Shown here one piece after another: positions 44,379 through 55,600 of a stretch of DNA of 64,000 bases. This DNA is from Oopsacas minuta. Lineage: Eukaryota > Animalia > Porifera. The stretch lies in the NCBI GenBank assembly GCA_024704765.1, contig JAKMXF010000055.1, forward strand, positions 64,255-128,254. The letters are read 5' to 3'. Each line of letters starts with the position of its first letter. The stretch's first letter is position 1. The translations under genes and the position numbers were made by a program. A model generated the notes under the pieces. That model searched no databases. It saw only the letters and a list, made by a program, of their open reading frames with translations, and was not told where the DNA came from.

Positions 44379-46239
44379 CAGCACGGTTACAGCTGCGTAC
44401 AGCCATTACCATAGAAACCATTGATAAATGTTTTTGGGTTGCATAAAATGCCCTATTAGCAAGGGTGGGGGATAAACCAATGATTGAATTCATAATATCA
44501 ATCCCACTTTTACCAATCCCAGCAAGCTTACCACCCAATACTTGTAACATATTGTGACCAAACATTATTTTATTATCTCCCTCAGTGGATTGGGATCTAG
44601 GGAGCGAATAAAATTCTGAAGAATGTCGACACTGTTCGCAGATAATATACTAATGCTTGACAACACCATTCGTATAACAGGATTGGTACAGTCCTAAATT
44701 TCCTTTCATACAATATTTACACATAGAAACTTCAGCTAAACTGTTTTCAAGTATACTTATGTCAATAAGAACTTGACCATCGACCTTTGACAAATTTCTA
44801 GTTACTGGTTTTTCCTTCCCAATCTGAAATATATCCATATCTTTATGCTGAATACCACCGATACAACTACGACTAAGTTTACTTTCAGAAGTAGTGAGAC
44901 AAACTTCAGAGATGGCTTCTAATTCACACAGCTCACTGTCAACATTATCATCCAACTTAGGGGACTTACTTCGTAGTTCCAACTCTTCAAAATCAGAAGT
45001 CAAACTTGATTGGCCGAAAGAGGTAGGAGGTCGGATAGTTTTCGGATTGAAACGATGAACAAAACTTTTCTTACTTTTTTCTTACCATAAACAAATCAAT
45101 TTGGAGGAATATAAGCAAAATTTGAATCTGTTGCAGTAAATTGTGCAATAGACGAAGAAGGTTGTACAAAATCAAAATTCTTAGGAACAGTATTGACGAA
45201 CAATGAATCATCATTCTTATTTCCGTCACCCTTTGGACCCGGGTTTAGTTCTACACACCCAATTACAAGTAACATTGAGATCACACAAGCAAGAAGAGCT
45301 ATGCCTGACGCAATTTCTAGTTGAAAGTGCTGGGAGAAGAAGAACATTATTCTCTTTGAATTGAATAACCCAATTTTAGCTCTCCAGAGCTCCAAAGCGA
45401 TCATTGATAGAGAAAAAATGACAATAAATATGCTAAAGGTTTGAAGAGAAGGGATTGGTAAGAATAATTGCAAACACAAATGGAATATAGGGATCAATAT
45501 AAATTTCGCGAATAAAAAAGATAACTATGAAACCCAGCAGGGTAAAGCGAGTTTGTTAATGACTAATAAGTAGGATACGGTACATTAAATTTAGGTGCTG
45601 GCCCTAGAGTTTTATAAGGTTTTTTCCTCCATCTGAATAGACTCTCCCTTGTCCAGCCGCATTTACTATCGCTTACTCTGTAGTTCCAGGAAGGATAATG
45701 AAAATGTACAAATTCTTCCTCTGAACTAGGAAGCTCTGGTAGTGACTCTGAGGATTCTGTAACCGTAAAATCCTCCAGCTTCATCCTTTTCGCTGGAGTC
45801 TCTTCAGTTTTCTCCAATCCCCATTTGCGGGTTGTATATGTACATCTTGAGGCTCTCCCTCTGTTTTCAGGTGGGAGATAGCCTGGTGGAGACGTTTGGG
45901 ATTTTGAAAATTCTCGAGACATTCTTATATATTCTATTGGAACATGTGCAAAATTATATCAGCATTGGGGTATATCGAATACTTCAGTCAAATTTCATAA
46001 TCAGACAATCAAATTGTGACACGTGTTGAGATGCGTAATTATTTGTGAGATATGGAAATATTTTAAAGAAGTCATCAGAATATATAACGGCAAAATGCGA
46101 AAAATATTTGAGATATTAATTCAAAACAGCCCAGAAATCTTGGAAAACTTCCTAAGAACCCAAGAATCCAATAAAACAGAAAATATTAGAATTTCAAAAA
46201 TTTCTGAAAATTATGCATATTATATAGGATACTTCCCCC
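44379..46239 (-). mobile_element. 5' part of a TTAA-targeting DNA transposon (Kolobok-like by inference)
   Basis: Terminus GGGGGAAGTATCC (minus strand) next to TTAA at 46240-46243; degraded transposase N-half (QVLIDISIL...CKYC...G; AGIGKSGI...IIGL). Confidence 0.75.
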
Positions 46240-46243
46240 TTAA

Positions 46244-46445
46244 ATAGACGTGAATTCAATGCTCTTGATTTGATATAATTGACAATTTTAACAGCATCAT
46301 CAAATACCATGTGTAATTCTGGGCTCATTTTCTTAGTTGCCAAGGCTTGTTTATGAATCATGCAATGTTGCCATTTTAAATTTGGATTTACTGACTTAAG
46401 GTGAGCAATAAGACCATTTGTGTGTCCTGTTATTGAGGGATCATT
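46244..46445 (-). mobile_element. hAT (ZBED5-type) transposase fragment upstream of the TTAA insertion site
   Basis: SITGHTNGL...QHCMIHKQAL...VKIVNYIKSRALNSRLF. Confidence 0.85.
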
Positions 46446-46606
46446 TGGATTTAGCATATATGGAATTTATCATAATTCATACATACATACTAAGACTATC
46501 GAACATTTACTAATCAATTGAATAACATACCTATGTTGAAAACAAATTATCGTATAAAGGTAACAACCTAATAGTAATTGCAATAGAGTTAAGGTAAATA
46601 CTTGCT

Positions 46607-46720
46607 TATTTATAGTTGAGTGAGTAAGAAGAGTAGATGTGCCTATTGTATTATTCTAAAGTTGTGACTATGGATTAAGTGAAGTGAGTAGTGGAAATTC
46701 TAGAATATTCCAGAATGTTC
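46607..46720 (-). promoter_or_regulatory. Putative heat-shock promoter in the element's 3' region: five-unit HSE plus TATA box
   Basis: TTCtaGAAtaTTCcaGAAtgTTC at 46698-46720; TATAAATA on the minus strand at 46614-46607; CT-A-TT initiator-like site 30 nt downstream (46584); AG|GTATGT donor at 46531|46530. Confidence 0.65.
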
Positions 46721-46821
46721 TTTTTGTCTAAAAATAGAACTCCTTCTAATAATAGTGATATACGGCAGTTTTGACCTATATACAGCCTGCCAAAGGGCTT
46801 AGAAATCTGTTCGTCATTCTT

Positions 46822-49239
46822 CTATAATAGTTCTGTGACTTTGTCTTCTTCTACTTGTGTGTGAAGGTCCATGATTTCGTCATGAAGACGCTGTATCTCT
46901 GTATTGGACTGTTCTCGATGCTCCGTTTGGAGTAGTTGTATGTCTACTGTGGTGGAGCACATACTGGAGGGAATATTTGTGAAGATAGCTGGGTCTCCAG
47001 CTGGTAGCCAGCTTTTTCTATAACTGGGCAAGATCTGGTAGTCAAATAGCCAGGCGGCTATTGACATTATATTACCAGTGAAGAGGGGATCTTGAGCCTC
47101 TAGTTCCTCTATAGAGGGTTCCTCCATTAAGGTAGGAAGGTAACAACTCTTCTCGTTTAATATAGTAGAAAGGGGAGAAGCTAGAAGTAAATTGCTGCTA
47201 GTGCCTTGTACTGGGGCCCCCACTCTGAGGGGGTGCTCTATGTCATGATGTGAGCCAGATCCGCCGACTGGTCCTGTGCCTCTAAATTGGGTCGTAATGA
47301 GATCATGCCAGGACATGTTTATAGGCATGATGTTGAACCTGGAGTTGGCCTGGAACCAATCTGGTCCATTGGGATTGCTTCCCCAGCTGTCGACACTGAT
47401 GTCGCTATGTAGAGCGGAGTGGTCTGAGTCGGGTAATGAGTGGTCCGGACTTGGTGGCATGATAGTGGTGTCTCCTTGATTGTGAAGTGGGACTTCGTGG
47501 CCGATGTTGGAAGGTATATATGTAAGTGTCCAGGTTGGACTTGGCCTTATGGTTGGTCGGTCCCCGATGACGTCATGCATCAGGACCTGGTTAATATGTA
47601 GAAGTTCCGAGGAGTTTAGTGTTCCAGCCCAGAGATCTTTATATGGCGAGTGGTGACTGTGGATTTTACGCCATGTTTTGGACTGGCGGAGCCAGTACCC
47701 GAATTGGTTCTTTAAGAACATGTGGCCAATTGGGTCTCTAGGGTCGAAACCTTTGGCGTAGTGTATTTTGTCCAGGATTAGATCGTGAATCTCTGGAGGG
47801 TAGCCTCTTGCTGGTAGAGATTTTGTGAAGCGTTGCCATACTTCCAGGAATAGGATATTGTTAGACGTAAATATGATGAATCTAATCACCATGATAATGA
47901 GATATCCAAAGTGAAGTCTTGGACTTATCGCATCATAGAGGGGACTAAATAGATTAACCCAGGTGGGTTTTATGTGCACTCTATATTGGCCGGTATGGTT
48001 TATTTCAAAGCCTAGCCAGGCTGCATAGTTATCTGTGCCGGCGTGTTGGATGGTGATTAGCTGTCCCTCTCTCTTGTAGCTTTCCTGTAGTGAGTTGATG
48101 ACTATGTTGGTGTCGTGTGTAGGTGGTATAATCACAAGGATGTCATCGAGATATCTCCCGTGCCACACGTCAGGGTGTCTTTTACGGAATTCTAGGTCCA
48201 ACATAAAAAGCGTGAAGTCCGCTAGAAATGGCGCTGCTGCGCTTCCTTGAGATAGGCCACTCACTTGTTTGTATACTATCTTGTTGACCTGTACGTATGT
48301 GTGTTCTAATAAGTATAAGGATCGCGCCCATACGTTCATGTAGACAGGTAGGAGTTGTGCTGGTACGTATTCAAAGAAATATTTAAATGTTCTATGGACC
48401 ATATTGTGCTTTATGGAAGGATAGCAACCCTCTACATCTAATTCTACTAGGGAGGGGGGCTTTCCATAGTACTGTAGCATACTATCAATGGTGCGTGAAG
48501 CTTGGTCCAGTCCTACGTACTCATATTCAGCATGGATTTCATGGAATCTGAAGAGAGTAGTCAATTCTTTTAAGAAGGAATAGCCAAAGAAGGATATAAA
48601 CTTTGCTGAGGCCTCTAGGTATGAGAATCCCTGTACAAGAATTCTTCCGGGTACTGGGATGCGATTCTTGTGTATTTTAGGCATCATATAAATCTTGGAT
48701 GCGTTGATTTTGTCATAAGAGGATGGATTTGTAACTACTTGATATTTTGATGGATCGTTGATCACCAAACCTCTTTGCTGTTGTAACCATTGTTTGCTGT
48801 GAATACACAATCCCATGCCCTTGTCAGTTTTCCTTATATGCGGGCCTCGCCTTCTTCTTGCATAATAAAATAGCTGTGTTAGTCCCACTGTGAGTGATGG
48901 TGGGAGGAGTTTTGAGCGAGTGGGGAGACTGTTTCTACTTACGTCAATATGCGCGTGGGATCCTAACCACAATAATTGAAGATATGTATCGTTAGGACAG
49001 AGTTGTTCGAAATCCCGATTTCTGTATTCATCCAGGTGTTTGCTGGTATAGTCGAGAGCGACCTCTAGACCCATCTCTCTCACTGCGGTTGGTGTTGCAG
49101 TGTACCATCGGCCTTGGAGAAAGAGTGTGCACATAGTTGACCAGGTTTTGAGCTGTGCCCCGAGGAGGGGTGTGTCCTCCTCGGGGCTAAAAACAAGAGG
49201 CTCTTCTTCTAACTGCGAGACTTGAATAGATCCGGACAT
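46822..49239 (-). CDS. Penelope-type reverse transcriptase, 805 aa, no GIY-YIG domain, ~300-aa unknown C-terminal extension
   Basis: KTDKG, YMMPKIHK..PGRILV, LDVEGCYPSI, YKQVSGLSQGSAAAPFLAD, RYLDD, WLGFEI, RGYP thumb. Confidence 0.9.
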   Translation of the reverse strand: MSGSIQVSQLEEEPLVFSPEEDTPLLGAQLKTWSTMCTLFLQGRWYTATPTAVREMGLEVALDYTSKHLDEYRNRDFEQLCPNDTYLQLLWLGSHAHIDVSRNSLPTRSKLLPPSLTVGLTQLFYYARRRRGPHIRKTDKGMGLCIHSKQWLQQQRGLVINDPSKYQVVTNPSSYDKINASKIYMMPKIHKNRIPVPGRILVQGFSYLEASAKFISFFGYSFLKELTTLFRFHEIHAEYEYVGLDQASRTIDSMLQYYGKPPSLVELDVEGCYPSIKHNMVHRTFKYFFEYVPAQLLPVYMNVWARSLYLLEHTYVQVNKIVYKQVSGLSQGSAAAPFLADFTLFMLDLEFRKRHPDVWHGRYLDDILVIIPPTHDTNIVINSLQESYKREGQLITIQHAGTDNYAAWLGFEINHTGQYRVHIKPTWVNLFSPLYDAISPRLHFGYLIIMVIRFIIFTSNNILFLEVWQRFTKSLPARGYPPEIHDLILDKIHYAKGFDPRDPIGHMFLKNQFGYWLRQSKTWRKIHSHHSPYKDLWAGTLNSSELLHINQVLMHDVIGDRPTIRPSPTWTLTYIPSNIGHEVPLHNQGDTTIMPPSPDHSLPDSDHSALHSDISVDSWGSNPNGPDWFQANSRFNIMPINMSWHDLITTQFRGTGPVGGSGSHHDIEHPLRVGAPVQGTSSNLLLASPLSTILNEKSCYLPTLMEEPSIEELEAQDPLFTGNIMSIAAWLFDYQILPSYRKSWLPAGDPAIFTNIPSSMCSTTVDIQLLQTEHREQSNTEIQRLHDEIMDLHTQVEEDKVTELL

Positions 49240-49253
49240 AGACAGCTCGACGT

Positions 49254-51977
49254 CTATGTCCGGCGACCTTTTGGCTGTTTAGTATTAGCAGAGTTAGGAT
49301 ATAGTTGGTGAGTGCAGAATTGTCTTCTGTGGCCGTATCTTCCACATCCGTTGCACTTTATACTTGGTCTGCCACAAGCTGTGGAGACATGGCCAGGCCT
49401 CTGGCAATTGTGACAGATTAGGGGGTTACGACCCCTGATTGTTTGTGCTCTGTCGAGTTTAGGAGAGTAACTTCTACTTCTGCTCTTAGACCTGAATCTG
49501 GTGGGAGCTCTAATATTGGCTCTGAGGTTGTAAGGTGAACGGCTCCTAGTTTGTGATGGAGTAGGGCTTCTTCCTCTGGCTGGTGACTTTGTTCTAGATC
49601 TTGATCTTCCTTGTTGGTGTCGGACTATATCGTTGGTAGTCCAGTTACTGCCATAGGAGTTGTTAGATGATCTGCTTCGTGACCTAGTGTCACGCCATCT
49701 ATTGTTTCTTCTTCTGTTTCCTCTAGTAAATGAGCTTCTAGAGGTGGAGTTGGATCTCCTTGATCTATTACTTCTAGAGCTGGATCTAGAGAATCTTGAG
49801 GGAGATCGGCCTGATCTGCTAGAGGTGGTGGACCAGGAGGATGAGGTAGATGAGGACCTGCTGGACCTGGATGATCTAGAGGATCTTGAGGAGGCTCTAG
49901 AGTTGGATCTGTAGCCTCTTCTTCCTGGGAGCCTAGATATAGATGGAGATCTGGAGCGAGATCTGCTCCGTTGTCTTGTTCTCCTTGATTTTCTCTGAGT
50001 TGAATTTCTATTATCTCTGCCAGTACTCTTTGGTCTCCGGAAGGTTGTAGAGTCTCTTCTTCGGGAGTTACGTCCAGGGACTGCCTCAGCGTTGTTGGGA
50101 TTAGTGAGGACAGCTGGCTCGAAGACCTTTCCGTCTTGGCTGACGATGTTGAGGTCAGCATCATGATAAAGGTAGGTATGCCTACTTTCACTGAGTTTCT
50201 TGGCATATCTTTGCTGTAGTCGACACTCTCCGTTCAGGTGTACTACTACTCCAGGCATCTTGGTGACTGTAAGGCCGCTAGGATCTGCGTCAGAGATCTC
50301 GTAGTACTTCCAGCTGTGGAGGTAACAGGGGCCGTACTTACAGTGTATATTTCGATGGTCGTTGCCATCGAAATGCCGGTGGTATTGGCAGGTTTTGTCT
50401 CGGTTTCCTAATAAGATGTTGACATCTGCGAAGATGTAAGCTGCTTTTCTGCGCTCATCTTCTTTAAGGGCCTTTGCCATATAGGCCCTTTCCCACTGCT
50501 CCGTAGCTTTCTCTTGTACTGTTACCAGAGCATTGTGTATATCCTGGTAGACAAATAGAATTATCCCCCAGTCTTTTATTCTCAGCGCACTCCCATCTCT
50601 CATTTTTACATCTTCTGAAGAGATTCTGAGTACGTCTATGGCGTCTCTTCCTAGCAACCAGCTCTGTTGGCTTACTGGTAGAAAGCGGAAGGTGCTGCAT
50701 CTTATCTTGTCTGTGACCAGTCGTAGAGCTTTTGGAATGTTGTTTCTGATTTCCCCGGTGATAGTTTCTTTTAAGACGATATTGTGTGCTACCATATCTC
50801 GTAGCTTCGTCATTATCCTCTTGGTTGTGGAGTTGGCTAAGATGTCTCCATCTTCCATTATGCTAATGTTCTCCACATGGTCTGTTAGCATGAAGGTGTT
50901 GATAATTTCTTCTGCTCCGGGATAGTACTCGACTGTGAGTGAGGTGTCTTCCGGTAGGGCATTTAACTCTTCAAAGATGGTCTTGAAGTAGTTTTTCTGG
51001 ATTGATGTTATTAGGTTGTTAAGCTGAGACGAGAGGACAATAAGATGGGAGGTTTCGTTCTGAATCATTGATATTGTGTTGTCCAGCAGCTTGGCTGCGA
51101 CCTCCTTCTTAAATTCGTCTCGCTGACGGGTGGCATGATGTCTAGCGAGGACTTCTTTCTCTGCGTCTTTCAGCCAAGAGGTAGGTATTATAGATCGGAG
51201 GTTTCTGTATTCCTCCTCATCTAGATTTGGGTCGATTCCGACCTGGGTCACCCAGGCTTCGACGTACTTTCGGGACTTTTCCATCCTGTCGAGCCTGTGT
51301 CCTAGAGAGTATAATTGTGTATACTTCTTCTGCAGTTCTGTGGTCTTTCTCTTGAGGAAGGCGTTGGTGAATTTCCTAGTGTGGTTTTTGAGAAAGGATA
51401 TTAAGGTTTGCTTCTTGTGTGATCCTGACGGTCGGAGTCTCAGATTGTCTTGGACGATCTTTCTTAAGAAGCCGGTGTCAAAACCGTATCGTCTATTATC
51501 CTCATGAAGAGAGGAATATTTATTTACTCCCAGTTCCCGTATGTCAGGACGGGATTCAGCAGCTGGGTGTACATTTAATTGTACTGTCTTTGACTTCATT
51601 ATCCCAGGCTTGGTAGGGACTGGGTTCATTCCTGCAGCAATGTCTTCTAGTAGAGCAGCCAGTTCGTCATCTAGTTTTCCGGATGCTCTGTACATCTCTA
51701 TGGTGTCCGCTATGTGAGGCTTCTTGGGGATGAATGGCGCGGCATCGCTATCCAACTTTGATGTGGGGAGCGCATTCATCCTGAAGCGGTCTTCTTCTAT
51801 GAGTGCAGACAGCTGGGCTGTGTCTGCAATGTGCGTGACTTTTCTCGCACGGGGTTCTTCTGTCGATGAGGATGGGACAGACATCTCATCGGGTGACTTA
51901 GTTCGCACGCTCGACATGGAGGGTGCATCTGGAGTGAGTCCATCTGGTTTGGAATAGTGAGCGAGGAAATGTCCCAA
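49254..51977 (-). CDS. Gag-like nucleic-acid-binding ORF1: coiled coil, Cys/His cluster, RS domain, two CCHC zinc knuckles
   Basis: CHNCQRPGHVSTAC and CNGCGRYGHRRQFC; long RS/SR tract; the track start is TTG, the first ATG is at 51917, and the frame is open up to 52133. Confidence 0.85.
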   Translation of the reverse strand: MGHFLAHYSKPDGLTPDAPSMSSVRTKSPDEMSVPSSSTEEPRARKVTHIADTAQLSALIEEDRFRMNALPTSKLDSDAAPFIPKKPHIADTIEMYRASGKLDDELAALLEDIAAGMNPVPTKPGIMKSKTVQLNVHPAAESRPDIRELGVNKYSSLHEDNRRYGFDTGFLRKIVQDNLRLRPSGSHKKQTLISFLKNHTRKFTNAFLKRKTTELQKKYTQLYSLGHRLDRMEKSRKYVEAWVTQVGIDPNLDEEEYRNLRSIIPTSWLKDAEKEVLARHHATRQRDEFKKEVAAKLLDNTISMIQNETSHLIVLSSQLNNLITSIQKNYFKTIFEELNALPEDTSLTVEYYPGAEEIINTFMLTDHVENISIMEDGDILANSTTKRIMTKLRDMVAHNIVLKETITGEIRNNIPKALRLVTDKIRCSTFRFLPVSQQSWLLGRDAIDVLRISSEDVKMRDGSALRIKDWGIILFVYQDIHNALVTVQEKATEQWERAYMAKALKEDERRKAAYIFADVNILLGNRDKTCQYHRHFDGNDHRNIHCKYGPCYLHSWKYYEISDADPSGLTVTKMPGVVVHLNGECRLQQRYAKKLSESRHTYLYHDADLNIVSQDGKVFEPAVLTNPNNAEAVPGRNSRRRDSTTFRRPKSTGRDNRNSTQRKSRRTRQRSRSRSRSPSISRLPGRRGYRSNSRASSRSSRSSRSSRSSSTSSSWSTTSSRSGRSPSRFSRSSSRSNRSRRSNSTSRSSFTRGNRRRNNRWRDTRSRSRSSNNSYGSNWTTNDIVRHQQGRSRSRTKSPARGRSPTPSQTRSRSPYNLRANIRAPTRFRSKSRSRSYSPKLDRAQTIRGRNPLICHNCQRPGHVSTACGRPSIKCNGCGRYGHRRQFCTHQLYPNSANTKQPKGRRT

Positions 51978-52549
51978 TCTGGCGGCTGAGATGTTGAATC
52001 CAGTGAGGAAGGTAAGAGGGGCTTCTGTGACAACATCTCGGTCTTTGCCTTTTGAGGTAGTATAGCTGAAACCAATGCTGGCGTACCAGTACGGACATCT
52101 CCCGCATTGTCTGCAAAGTATTGCGAAGCTGATCTAGACGAGTTCCTAATATAGCGGACGATGAGTGCTCGTCTGGTGACATAAAAGAAATCGAGGAACT
52201 CCTTGTCGGTCCAATTAAGAGTGGAAATGATCCCGTCCAGGACGAAATCCTCTGTAGTAGGGTGTATTCCTCCCATGTTGAGTCCTTTGGCTCCGAGTCT
52301 TGCGAAGTCTGTTCCTTCTCCGACCCATACTCCTCTTCCATACATGCCAATGCCTCCCGAAATTGCACTGCCAGGAGGGTATATAAGCTCCTCATCATCA
52401 GTTTGTATAAGATCTGGGGGTCTTGTAACTGGTATGCCATCAAGAGAGGGAGGGGGATTTTCACCTGTAAATATTCTAAGATGTGGTCTACGTGGTGGAA
52501 TAATATCATCAGTAGACACAGAAATGATATCGGCTTCGTTAGTCGCCAT
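51797..52549 (-). CDS. ORF0 of the retroelement, 250 aa, overlapping ORF1
   Basis: ATG in a strong context (A at -3, G at +4) 6 nt inside the 5' repeat; no known motif. Confidence 0.55.
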   Translation of the reverse strand: MATNEADIISVSTDDIIPPRRPHLRIFTGENPPPSLDGIPVTRPPDLIQTDDEELIYPPGSAISGGIGMYGRGVWVGEGTDFARLGAKGLNMGGIHPTTEDFVLDGIISTLNWTDKEFLDFFYVTRRALIVRYIRNSSRSASQYFADNAGDVRTGTPALVSAILPQKAKTEMLSQKPLLPSSLDSTSQPPDWDISSLTIPNQMDSLQMHPPCRACELSHPMRCLSHPHRQKNPVREKSRTLQTQPSCLHS

Positions 52550-52599
52550 AATTTTCTATGTTGAAAACAAATTATCGTATAAAGGTAACAACATGTTGT

Positions 52600-53200: not shown

Positions 53201-55600
53201 GGGGAAAGTATCCTGAAACAACCTTATAGTGAAAGTATTTGATAAATTTGGCCCAAATTTCTAGTAGGTTTCTGACCCCCTTCGATCCTTCCAAAAATGC
53301 ATTAATATTAGCAAGTATTAAAAATCTAAATTCCTATTTGAAATTTATGGATCAAATTTCTAGAAATAATTTAAAATTTTCAAAAGGCTAATTACATTCA
53401 ATAACTGTTTTAAAACGTTCAATACATTTACAAATAGCTTTTCTACTCACTCGATTTTCTATAAAACAACCAGGAAGTAATTTTGGATTTCCCAAGCTTT
53501 GGTTGAATTTACATGTGGGCATTAAAAATATTTTATTTAAATTATCGTATTTTTAGACTTTAAATCAAAGTTCGAAAGATTAGAAAAGTTACAAAACTGC
53601 CTAAGCTACCAGAATCCGTTTACAAATCAGTAATCGGTAATATATATTTAAAATTATGATTTTTAGACATGGAAATTTTTACATTCTGAGATAATCGCCC
53701 AGAAAGTAAGAAATTTACATAGAATGATGTTTTCAATAGTTTAAAGGCTGGAATATGCTAGTATACTAAGAATACAACTAAATACAATAATATATTACAA
53801 GAGAACACAACTATACTATCGTAAAAGATACATAAATAGGGTATATCTATGATCGCTGACACGTAGGACATATCCATAGCTCTTCCGCATTTACACACAA
53901 AACACTACCATAAATATTATTCAGACAGAAATTATGAAACCAGCTATTACACACATCAAAACAGGTCCAATCAAATACATCTATCTTAGCAACCTTTTTA
54001 CTATTAGATTTAGCACCACTGTTCTCATCACCACCACACAACATACAACAAACATCACTACTAACACTTACATGTGAATATGCACCACTCTTATATCCAT
54101 CACCTAATCTCTTCCTCCTGCGTTTGGATTGCTTTATTGACCATCTACGTTTCGTGTACTCTTTACCTTTCTTTAATTTGCTAAAATCTATTCTATCATT
54201 ATCAGACGAACTACAGAAGCGTATAAAGGATTGTGAAGGTTGCAATCCTAACTCCCTAACTAAATCTGTAATACCAGCAAAACCATCATTGTACTTAATG
54301 ACAGCGAGGCTTGATCCAAAATGCATCAGGTCCAGGTCAATTGCTCTTGTTTTAGGAATAAAAGACCAAATGACATTGTGCAAACTTTCATTCAAGTTTG
54401 ATGTCCTACCCGCCTTCACCTTATCTAAAAATGAAAGTGTCATATAGGGTCCTAGGATTTCAATGAGCCGGTCTTTGCATGATTGAGAGAGAGCTGTTGG
54501 ATGTGAAGGTATGGGATCTCCTAAGAATTTTGCTCTCCTATAGTGACACCAAGAGCTCTCACCTTCAGGACAAAACTGATGCATTTCGGAGCAATTCTCG
54601 TCTGTAGCTGCTAAATGGTAAACTATGGCCAATAATAAATCCCGAATTTCAGGTAATGTAGAAGTAGAATTAGATTTTATGGTATAACCATACAGGGAGG
54701 TGATTTTGTCAATAGTAGAGTCTGATAGTAATTCGATGTCAAAACTACTTTTATCTAAATCACTATCGTCCCATTTTTCCCTTACTAATTTAGAGTCACG
54801 AAACGTAAAAGGTCTATAAGCCTGCCTAATATGCTTCTTCGCTTTCTCAGTTTTAGCTACAGCCAACTCATGTAGCATCAATGTTTTTTGAGAAGCTATA
54901 AATTGCTTCTGTTTTTCCACCAAATGTATTTTGATACGTTTTTGCACGTGACTAAGGCATTCCTCACGTGAAATAACAACTCCATATTCACCATAAATAT
55001 CAATGTCGACCAAGATATTCATACTTTTGTCATCCCCATCCGCAACCACAGTAGAATATAATAATTTTTGGTCAATAGACTTACGAAAACAACAGGAGCT
55101 AACTTAGACTCTAAAGCCACGGAAGTATAATCCCCATATTCCTTTGCTTGGCATGTTTCCCGTGCTCGACTAGCCATAGGAAATAATCCTCCTTAGACAA
55201 CCTCTTGCTTTTAGAGCTTCTTGTTTTTCGACACAATATCAACAACCGTTGCAAGCAACTTCAAAGCTTAGTATTTAGCCGCTTTCTATGGAAATGGCTG
55301 CAGCAAAACAGTACCTCGCAAATCCGCCACCACCTTTCCCTGTCCTTTTTTGATAGGCACCATCATACGAAACTGCAACACTCAGAAATTCATCCCCTTG
55401 TTTTATGATACATGTTTCTCAACTTTTCAGCAGCACGGTTACAGCTGCGTACAGCCATTACCATAGAAACCATTGATAAATGTTTTTGGGTTGCATAAAA
55501 TGCCCTATTAGCAAGGGTGGGGGATAAACCAATGATTGAATTCATAATATCAATCCCACTTTTACCAATCCCAGCAAGCTTACCACCCAATACTTGTAAC
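53201..55600 (-). mobile_element. 3' part of the Kolobok-like transposon with catalytic region and PHD finger
   Basis: AVSYDGAYQKR, ADGDDKS, EECLSHVQKR, TSNLNESLHNVIW and a C-terminal PHD-like finger (ORF 53847-55049); terminus GGGGAAAGTATCC at 53201-53213 beside TTAA at 53197-53200. Confidence 0.8.

Follow-up and report, generated by a model that had tools for sequence, protein, structure and literature searches.

Comparative evidence for an outward-facing promoter, leader exon and splice donor at the 3' end of a putative Penelope-like retroelement in the glass sponge Oopsacas minuta

A retroelement of the glass sponge Oopsacas minuta ends in a compact module that points out of the element and consists of a TATA box, an initiator, an ATG-free leader and a GT splice donor. 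In copies of the family the same kind of leader is found joined to the first ORF, and the 3' module is conserved in relatives. From these two observations we conclude, by comparison of sequences, that the promoter, exon and donor are real and in family use, so that what began as motif spotting is now a comparatively supported feature. The account we favour, with a probability of about 0.5, is that this is the 3'-terminal expression module of an endonuclease-less Penelope-like retrotransposon, that its leader would be spliced onto a downstream copy, and that a heat-shock element (HSE) has been added here. The heat-shock part is real as sequence and private to the copy described; its function is predicted.

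The element and its class

The window (the whole 64,000-nucleotide stretch of O. minuta DNA analysed here) is rich in transposons. The element runs along its minus strand from 52592 to about 46440, a length of about 6.15 kb with three ORFs. Its parts, in the order in which the element is read, are these:

52556-52592, minus strand: 5' leader copy (R, 37 nt), an exact 37/37 direct repeat of 46531-46567
51797-52549, minus strand: ORF1, 250 aa, poorly conserved, with 35% identity to L135
49254-51977, minus strand: ORF2, gag-like; Arg/Ser-rich region, and two CCHC knuckles (zf-CCHC, weak) close to the C-terminus
46822-49239, minus strand: ORF3, reverse transcriptase (RT), 805 aa, RVT_1 E=9e-10, stop codon at 46824-46822
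46693-46720, no strand assigned: HSE of five perfect and one imperfect alternating nGAAn units, from triplet positions and a pattern search
46667-46675, minus strand: ATCCATAGT, a degenerate copy of the family's upstream motif ATCCATGGT, from comparison with eight relatives
46608-46615, minus strand: TATA box TATAAATA, with a TATA box at the matching place in L001, L002, L003, L004, L006, L008, L009 and L136
46573-46584, minus strand: initiator region and predicted transcription start; GCAATTACT is the counterpart of the relatives' TATCGCA(T/G)AA in the module alignment
46531-46567, minus strand: 3' leader copy (R), the body of the leader exon, repeat of the 5' copy
46525-46530, minus strand: 5' splice site GTATGT, directly after ...CATAG; AG/GT(A/G) stands at the same place in L001, L003, L004, L006, L008 and L136
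46440-46530, minus strand: 3' tail of about 90 nt, its end approximate and set by homology to the terminal block ...AAAATGATAGAGATT(T/A)TAGC

The first-pass annotation had picked out five perfectly alternating nGAAn units downstream of the RT stop, a TATA box, an ATG-free exon and an AG/GTATGT donor. All of them are present at the places given, when the minus strand is read: the stretch 46584-46531 contains no ATG, and the exon-intron border AG/GTATGT falls at 46532-46531/46530-46525. Beyond the element itself the window holds no other sequence resembling it, and the window copy is the only intact copy that we detected in the O. minuta genome. L135 (KAI6660767.1) is a second, decayed O. minuta copy with 68% nucleotide identity.

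A database search for ORF1 homologues returned the self-match alone, and ORF2 homologues are present in L001-L005, L008, L009 and L135. ORF1 and ORF2 overlap by 180 nt (51797-51977) in different frames, and the homology of ORF2 to its relatives begins at about residue 48-66; the overlap and the late start of homology suggest a programmed frameshift or separate initiation. Relatives of the RT are few, with 59-67% identity; the contigs that carry them are large, eukaryotic and taken from ENA metagenome assemblies.

ORF3 carries the motifs TDKGMG (DKG), then PKIHK...PGRILV, and RYLDD, and the DKG motif is diagnostic of Penelope-like elements, or PLEs (PMC8557442). A DK(N) motif is common to the distant relatives in the alignment consensus. 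Although phmmer of ORF3 against the PDB gave no match, a profile built from the family together with distant relatives matched group II intron, retron and telomerase RTs there, and no retroviral RT. An exhaustive search produced 342 remote matches, among which P0128 has an N-terminal GIY-YIG domain and P0074 a weak C-terminal GIY-YIG match (E=0.089), and these placements are the two PLE domain orders. ORF3 itself has no Pfam GIY-YIG match and no recognisable endonuclease, so that the element would be at most of the EN- type. Its C-terminal 356 aa yield an AlphaFold pLDDT of 37 and no recognisable fold; for the C-terminal third the prediction is mostly disorder, with a terminal helix. Searches of the window, L001, L003, L004, L006 and L008 revealed no hammerhead or other Rfam family; the Naiad and Chlamys PLEs are also without a hammerhead (PMC8557442). 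Partial tandems and inverted 5'-truncated copies, which are a PLE trait, occur in L008, L004/L005 and L002, though not at the solo window copy. On the strength of the DKG motif, the PDB and remote matches and these insertion signatures, with no endonuclease found, we call the element a Penelope-like, endonuclease-less lineage, an assignment made by motifs and remote matches and not by a labelled-reference phylogeny.

Other classes fit less well. An LTR or DIRS structure was rejected, because the repeat measures only 37 nt and the diagnostic domains are lacking: no rve or RNase H domain was found, nor a tyrosine recombinase or a repeat layout of DIRS/Ngaro type, and the segment before the 3' R is unlike the tail. 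The traits of Athena and Coprina elements were not seen either, since the insertions lie in hAT, Harbinger and Tc1-like sequences and the 3' ends have no telomeric repeat.

One distant RT relative is set in a different kind of DNA. P0041 (652 aa, about 25% identity) occurs together with a 573-aa ORF in L010-L014 (JGI metagenomes 33000568xx), on a unit of 6878 bp with a GC content of 53%. One contig holds 1.4 units at 100% identity and three contigs have terminal overlaps of 101-127 nt, which indicates a circular replicon or a perfect tandem; one or the other is found in four of the five contigs examined.

The surroundings of the window element are a dense transposon mosaic (hAT, Mutator-like/PHD and others) with many repeats at 90-99% identity. 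The sequence GGATACTT(C/T)CCCC stands beside TTAA, in inverted orientation, at 46228-46246 and 53205-53222; both sites interrupt a FAM200/hAT-like ORF between ...SRLFK and CEEMG..., and they resemble the two termini of piggyBac-type insertions (TTAA target) placed in two hAT copies. One flank of the retroelement is the C-terminal part of one hAT copy and the other flank the middle part of another, so the two do not continue each other. The region is bracketed by an exact direct repeat of 170 nt (44379-44548 and 55431-55600, 11,052 nt apart). An acceptor-like ...AATAACAG/G stands at 46426-46440, about 100 nt past the donor, and is followed by a hAT-fragment ORF (46457-46194); the outward promoter and donor could yield chimeric transcripts with such flanking sequence.

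Leader copies and 3' modules across the family

The last 37 nt of the leader (46567-46531) recur, identical at every position, at 52592-52556, which is the extreme 5' end of the element. What follows is different at the two ends: GTATGT after the 3' copy, and AAAATT and then the ATG of ORF1 after the 5' copy. Because the two copies diverge exactly at the AG/GT border, the integrated 5' end resembles a spliced leader-ORF1 product. The 5' leader copy, too, ends in a pyrimidine-rich tract and AG.

Three other 5' ends tell the same story. L003 has a 43/44-nt leader at both ends, 6174 nt apart and unlike that of the window in sequence; its 5' copy runs into TACC-ATG of ORF1, and its 3' copy into GTAAGA. 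The inverted copy of L004, L004(-), begins with CGCATAAAC and has 48 nt of leader immediately before the ATG. L135 opens with what corresponds to window positions 46578-46568, followed by the leader and then AA-ATG, so that its leader starts 11-14 nt upstream of R; this 5' end directly abuts the stop codon of a Tc1/mariner ORF. The leader is thus joined to ORF1 at four 5' ends (window, L003, L004(-) and L135), and the tail is present on none of them. From the leader joined to ORF1 in four copies, set against the leader followed by GT in the 3' modules, we infer a further PLE trait, transcription that starts within the terminal repeat and a 5'-UTR intron that crosses the junction.

We rejected a target-site duplication as the source of the 37-nt repeat, since splice signals border each copy, the leader repeated in L003 is a different one of 44 nt, and the 3' copy is set about 90 nt inward from the element's end. 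A scan of metagenomes for a 15-mer of the leader gave 120 chance matches, some of them bacterial-type contigs from human-gut metagenomes, and none is related at the DNA or protein level; no contig was regarded as human DNA, and none entered the further analysis.

The 5' ends of L135 and L004 place the start of transcription at or above 46578, 31-37 nt below the TATA box. A start near 46584 had been proposed from the window alone, and this fits, the L135 leader matching the window from 46578 onward, within a few nucleotides of that position. It follows from a start at or above 46578 that the window's own 5' leader copy is short by 11-17 nt. Its repeat indeed begins 11-17 nt below the predicted start, and this copy is either 5'-truncated or began elsewhere.

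The module itself is found at eight related 3' ends, each with a TATA box and a ATCCATGGT-like upstream motif (L001, L002, L003, L004, L006, L008, L009 and L136). Six of the eight (L001, L003, L004, L006, L008 and L136) keep the full layout, namely the TATA box, TATCGCA(T/G)AA about 31 nt further on, a leader ending in a pyrimidine-rich AG, and then GT(A/G), with the donor 78-107 nt from the TATA box. The other two, L002 and L009, keep the TATA box and initiator, and the remainder downstream has decayed. In every leader, pyrimidines make up 60-85% of the 20 nt that precede the AG. When a profile of the promoter module (about 100 nt) was searched against sponge loci amounting to about 200 kb, no module was found away from an RT; every one was attached to an RT. 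The claim that an outward-facing promoter, exon and donor serve the element has therefore gained from the comparison: the leader is at the element's own 5' end, the join is exact to the AG, and the module is kept in relatives.

In all eight relatives the ATCCATGGT-like motif precedes the TATA box by 29-84 nt, and it is often present twice. Its recurrence there suggests that it is probably the ancestral upstream promoter element of the family.

The tail past the donor is also part of the element, as its shared terminal block attests. In L003, and at two tandem junctions in L008, the tail ends with this block. Module and tail of L008 directly abut a 5'-truncated copy, on both strands, and both junctions come after ...AAAATGATAGAGATTTTAGC; in L003 the Harbinger flank resumes after the block. 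The L003 3' flank had been a candidate for Harbinger coding sequence with a 10-bp duplication, which we rejected because the same block ends the tail at the two L008 junctions. The window tail retains only ...AAATCCAAATGAT, to about 46440, where a hAT-like coding flank begins. No poly(A) tail was found at the element's 3' end, and a motif scan of the tails detected a poly(A) signal in L004 only. The terminal block is a candidate for an RT recognition or priming site.

In coordinates, the block ...AAAATGATAGAGATT(T/A)TAGC, with the related forms ...ATACGAGATTTTTGC and ...ATACGAGTTTTTTAGC, is located at about 10685-10714 in L003, at 7690-7665(-) and about 8895-8920 in L008, and in the tails of L001 and L006, and it marks the element's 3' end.

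Copies are arranged in ways familiar from PLEs. In L004/L005 an inverted 5'-truncated copy abuts a 5' end. A perfect palindrome with about 28 nt per arm (L004, 3640-3700) lies between the 5' end of the inverted full-length copy and the 5'-truncated copy, and it is a fold-back junction of the PLE-insertion kind. A junction of a tail with a full-length downstream copy, which would preserve the unspliced intron, was found in no locus examined. The first-pass annotation had further proposed that in tandem copies the promoter would drive the next element. The partial head-to-tail tandems of the relatives agree with this; the window copy does not exemplify it, having no upstream tandem partner. It is solo, with a 5' flank formed by a hAT-like ORF that has no TATA box, and L135 is likewise a solo insertion.

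The heat-shock element

Perfect TTC/GAA triplets stand in 5-nt phase at 46698, 46703, 46708, 46713 and 46718 (plus-strand coordinates), and a sixth, imperfect unit (GGA) begins at 46693. The array includes CTGGAATATTCTAG (46713-46700), which fits CTnGAAnnTTCnAG, the classical HSE consensus. The six-unit pattern with at most two mismatches matches once in the window, against a chance expectation of 0.01 per window, and it was reached in 1 of 100 shuffles. The TATA box lies 78 nt below the last unit, and the array about 110-140 nt upstream of the predicted start. Promoters of the hsp70 type have at least three contiguous inverted nGAAn units, a core promoter within about 300 bp of the HSE and a start about 30 nt past the TATA box; the window copy has each of these, with five perfect units and one imperfect and a predicted start. 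Judged by this layout the HSE would most likely recruit heat-shock factor (HSF) and so make the window module heat-inducible.

The relatives do not share it. At all eight related 3' ends, an HSE (three units, one mismatch allowed) is absent within 350 nt upstream of the TATA box; these eight form the comparison set, L135, the second O. minuta copy, being without its 3' part. Lack of conservation in other copies was what the first-pass annotation itself said would refute its reading, and at the level of the family conservation is indeed lacking (0/8). Heat control is therefore not a family trait, and the HSE, as far as the sequences compared go, is an addition in the lineage of the window copy, private among the copies examined.

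Between the RT stop and the HSE, a TATATA sits within an inverted repeat (GGCAG...CTGCC, about 46775-46800). Together with the HSE, which is independent of orientation, it might form an antisense promoter pointing into the RT gene.

Two explanations would take the heat response away from the element. The HSE may be inert, either a chance or recent palindromic AT-rich run or a site acting only antisense or on neighbouring DNA, with the promoter, leader and donor real all the same; this we consider possible but doubtful, and it is independent of whether the leader acts in cis or in trans. It would account for the missing HSE in eight of eight related modules, which share ATCCATGGT instead, and a TATATA on the far side of the HSE (about 46778-46786, in the inverted repeat) could serve an antisense start. 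Matches of three units are, moreover, commoner in the window than chance would have it (six against 0.88 expected), so local composition favours such words; two further ones (33077 and 43633) are unrelated AT-rich sequence. However, five perfect units in phase fix 15 bases, and the longer pattern retains its expectation of 0.01 per window even with two mismatches. Three units are all that HSF binding requires, and the array stands about 110-140 nt upstream of a start that is independently supported. The other explanation is that HSE and TATA box are part of a heat-shock gene of the host, situated downstream of the element; the combination of HSE, TATA box and 5'-UTR intron does resemble hsp promoters. 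We rejected it as having next to no chance of being right: the minus strand downstream consists of hAT-like and other transposon fragments with no chaperone domain, relatives in other hosts keep the TATA box, leader and donor immediately after their RT stop, and a second copy of the leader forms the 5' end of the element.

Mechanism, alternatives and known systems

The anatomy is established: the motifs, the splice-exact duplication of the leader, the conservation of the module, the tandems of the relatives and the PLE-like RT. The mechanism that we propose for it would work as follows. The module comprises upstream elements and a TATA box, with an initiator about 31-37 nt further on, then an ATG-free leader of about 50 nt with its pyrimidine tract and AG, and the GT donor. 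Transcription would begin in this 3' module and run outward from the element. Where a head-to-tail copy lies downstream, the leader would be spliced to an acceptor just upstream of ORF1. Because the leader ends in a pyrimidine tract and AG, the resident 5' leader could itself be that acceptor, in which case splicing would regenerate the leader-ORF1 join exactly. The spliced RNA would then read leader-ORF1-ORF2-RT-promoter-leader-tail and could be the template for new insertions. By analogy with DIRS-1 and ONSEN, the HSE of five to six units gained in the lineage of the window copy would add HSF-dependent induction. We infer the actual start site, cis-splicing across the tandem junction, HSF binding and heat induction from this anatomy.

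The leader might instead act in trans. The module would be a spliced-leader (SL) type of gene making a short capped RNA, composed of the leader and a tail of about 70-150 nt, and the leader would be trans-spliced onto read-through transcripts of any copy, with the pyrimidine-AG at the copy's 5' end as acceptor; in a variant, the leader is, or derives from, a host SL. We think such a role unlikely, though the host makes it worth weighing. Hexactinellids perform SL trans-splicing (PMC7986045), for which reason a trans-acting, SL-like role for the module remains a reading, and in Aphrocallistes vastus the leader motif is about 37 bp long and exists in many variants (PMC10282587), where the repeat here is 37 nt. 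A solo copy would gain a defined capped 5' end without an upstream promoter, and the window and L135 copies are in fact solo and without an upstream module. The layout is that of an SL gene in having a short leader exon and then a GT donor; leader and tail together come to about 120-200 nt, and the tail is without a poly(A) signal. All the leaders end in an acceptor-like pyrimidine-AG, which an acceptor needs and the end of an exon does not. Several findings speak against it. The tails of the window, L001, L003, L006 and L008 contain no Sm-type site, and that of L004 a single AATTTGA match, with no RAU(3-6)GR site conserved among them; the window tail folds into no stable structure (z = -0.68); no Rfam SL family was matched; and a TATA box with initiator is a promoter of mRNA type, not of snRNA type. 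The module was not found apart from an RT in the sponge DNA searched, and the partial tandems of PLEs already give a route in cis. If the element nevertheless owned its SL gene, which we regard as improbable, it would exploit the trans-splicing of glass sponges and be freed of a 5' promoter, and its donor RNA would be heat-inducible here.

Weaker than this is the reading of the element as a circular, pararetrovirus-like DNA, in which the repeat would be the terminal redundancy of an over-unit-length transcript, as in the pregenomic RNA of caulimoviruses and hepadnaviruses, and the promoter would only seem to face outward. The order R ... promoter-R, the Arg/Ser-rich, nucleic-acid-binding tail of ORF2 and the circular or tandem unit of the distant relative P0041 are in keeping with it. 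However, the GT and the 70-150-nt tail follow the 3' R alone, so that a circle with one R would need splicing; no RNase H domain was found, the RT belongs to neither the retroviral nor the hepadnaviral type, and the relatives sit in chromosomes, with 5' truncations and tandem or inverted arrangements as in PLEs. We consider a circular form very improbable. Our preferred reading is still the 3'-terminal module of a Penelope-like element, spliced in cis.

The comparison provides evidence at the DNA level for the use of a retroelement's 3'-end promoter: four integrated copies, belonging to at least two hosts, have the leader spliced to their first ORF. The element also represents a Penelope-like lineage of glass sponges that had not been described before; it has neither endonuclease nor hammerhead, its gag-like ORF is of CCHC type, and its 3' end holds the TATA-leader-donor module. 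Solo copies leave behind an outward-firing and possibly heat-responsive promoter with a splice donor, and neighbouring sequence could come under stress control. Since the host uses SL trans-splicing, the family is a test case for mobile elements that exploit or feed that machinery. Were the trans-acting reading true, part of the diverse hexactinellid leaders may come from such elements, or the elements may have captured a host SL gene.

The strategy of a 3' promoter is already known, and the window family is a variant of it. Penelope of D. virilis and Chlamys-3_cRei start transcription in the pLTR and have a 5'-UTR intron that spans the border between pLTR and body (PMC8557442); there, as proposed here, a promoter in the 3'-terminal sequence serves a downstream copy and the intron crosses the junction, and partial tandems, inverted 5'-truncated copies and a DKG motif in the RT are further common ground. 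Unlike them, the window element has neither a GIY-YIG endonuclease nor a hammerhead, and it has two extra upstream ORFs, one of them CCHC gag-like, as well as a TATA box and an HSE. Copies in this family carry an already spliced leader, whereas Penelope and Chlamys-3 carry a pLTR with its intron, and PLEs are noted for intron retention. Athena and Coprina resemble the window lineage in a PLE-type RT without endonuclease and in possible upstream ORFs (PMC8557442, PMC5537684). They are found at chromosome ends, with reverse-complement telomeric repeats at the 3' end and hammerheads; the window family is interstitial, inside transposons, its 3' end is ...GATAGAGATT(T/A)TAGC, and no hammerhead was found. 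The CCHC gag-like ORF sets the window lineage apart from all described PLEs.

The 3' promoter of HeT-A transcribes the element that follows it in the array (PMC5537684). HeT-A and TAHRE are thus alike in having a sense promoter at the 3' end, and new copies there begin with a piece of the upstream element's 3' end; unlike the window element, HeT-A is a non-LTR element (LINE-type), confined to telomeres, without leader splicing or an HSE. Metazoan SL RNA genes, those of hexactinellids included (PMC7986045, PMC10282587), are like the module in that a short non-coding tail and a GT donor come after an exon of about 37-50 nt with no ATG; the module differs in having no conserved Sm site, a TATA promoter of mRNA type and a constant attachment to an RT. 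The promoter is also like those of hsp70 type regulated by HSF, in that an alternating nGAAn array stands upstream of a TATA box and an untranslated leader; unlike them it drives a retroelement leader and no chaperone gene, and its HSF site is predicted. Plant ONSEN is an LTR element with an HSE, and DIRS-1 of Dictyostelium is a tyrosine-recombinase element with inverted repeats. DIRS-1 is reported to have a heat-shock promoter in its terminal repeats (Zuker et al. 1984, pmid 6326136, cited in PMC2685390). Both resemble the window copy in an HSE-bearing retroelement terminus, which in them drives stress transcription and here is predicted to do so. In DIRS-1 and ONSEN, however, the HSE is family-wide and experimentally tested, whereas that of the window is private to one copy and known from sequence.
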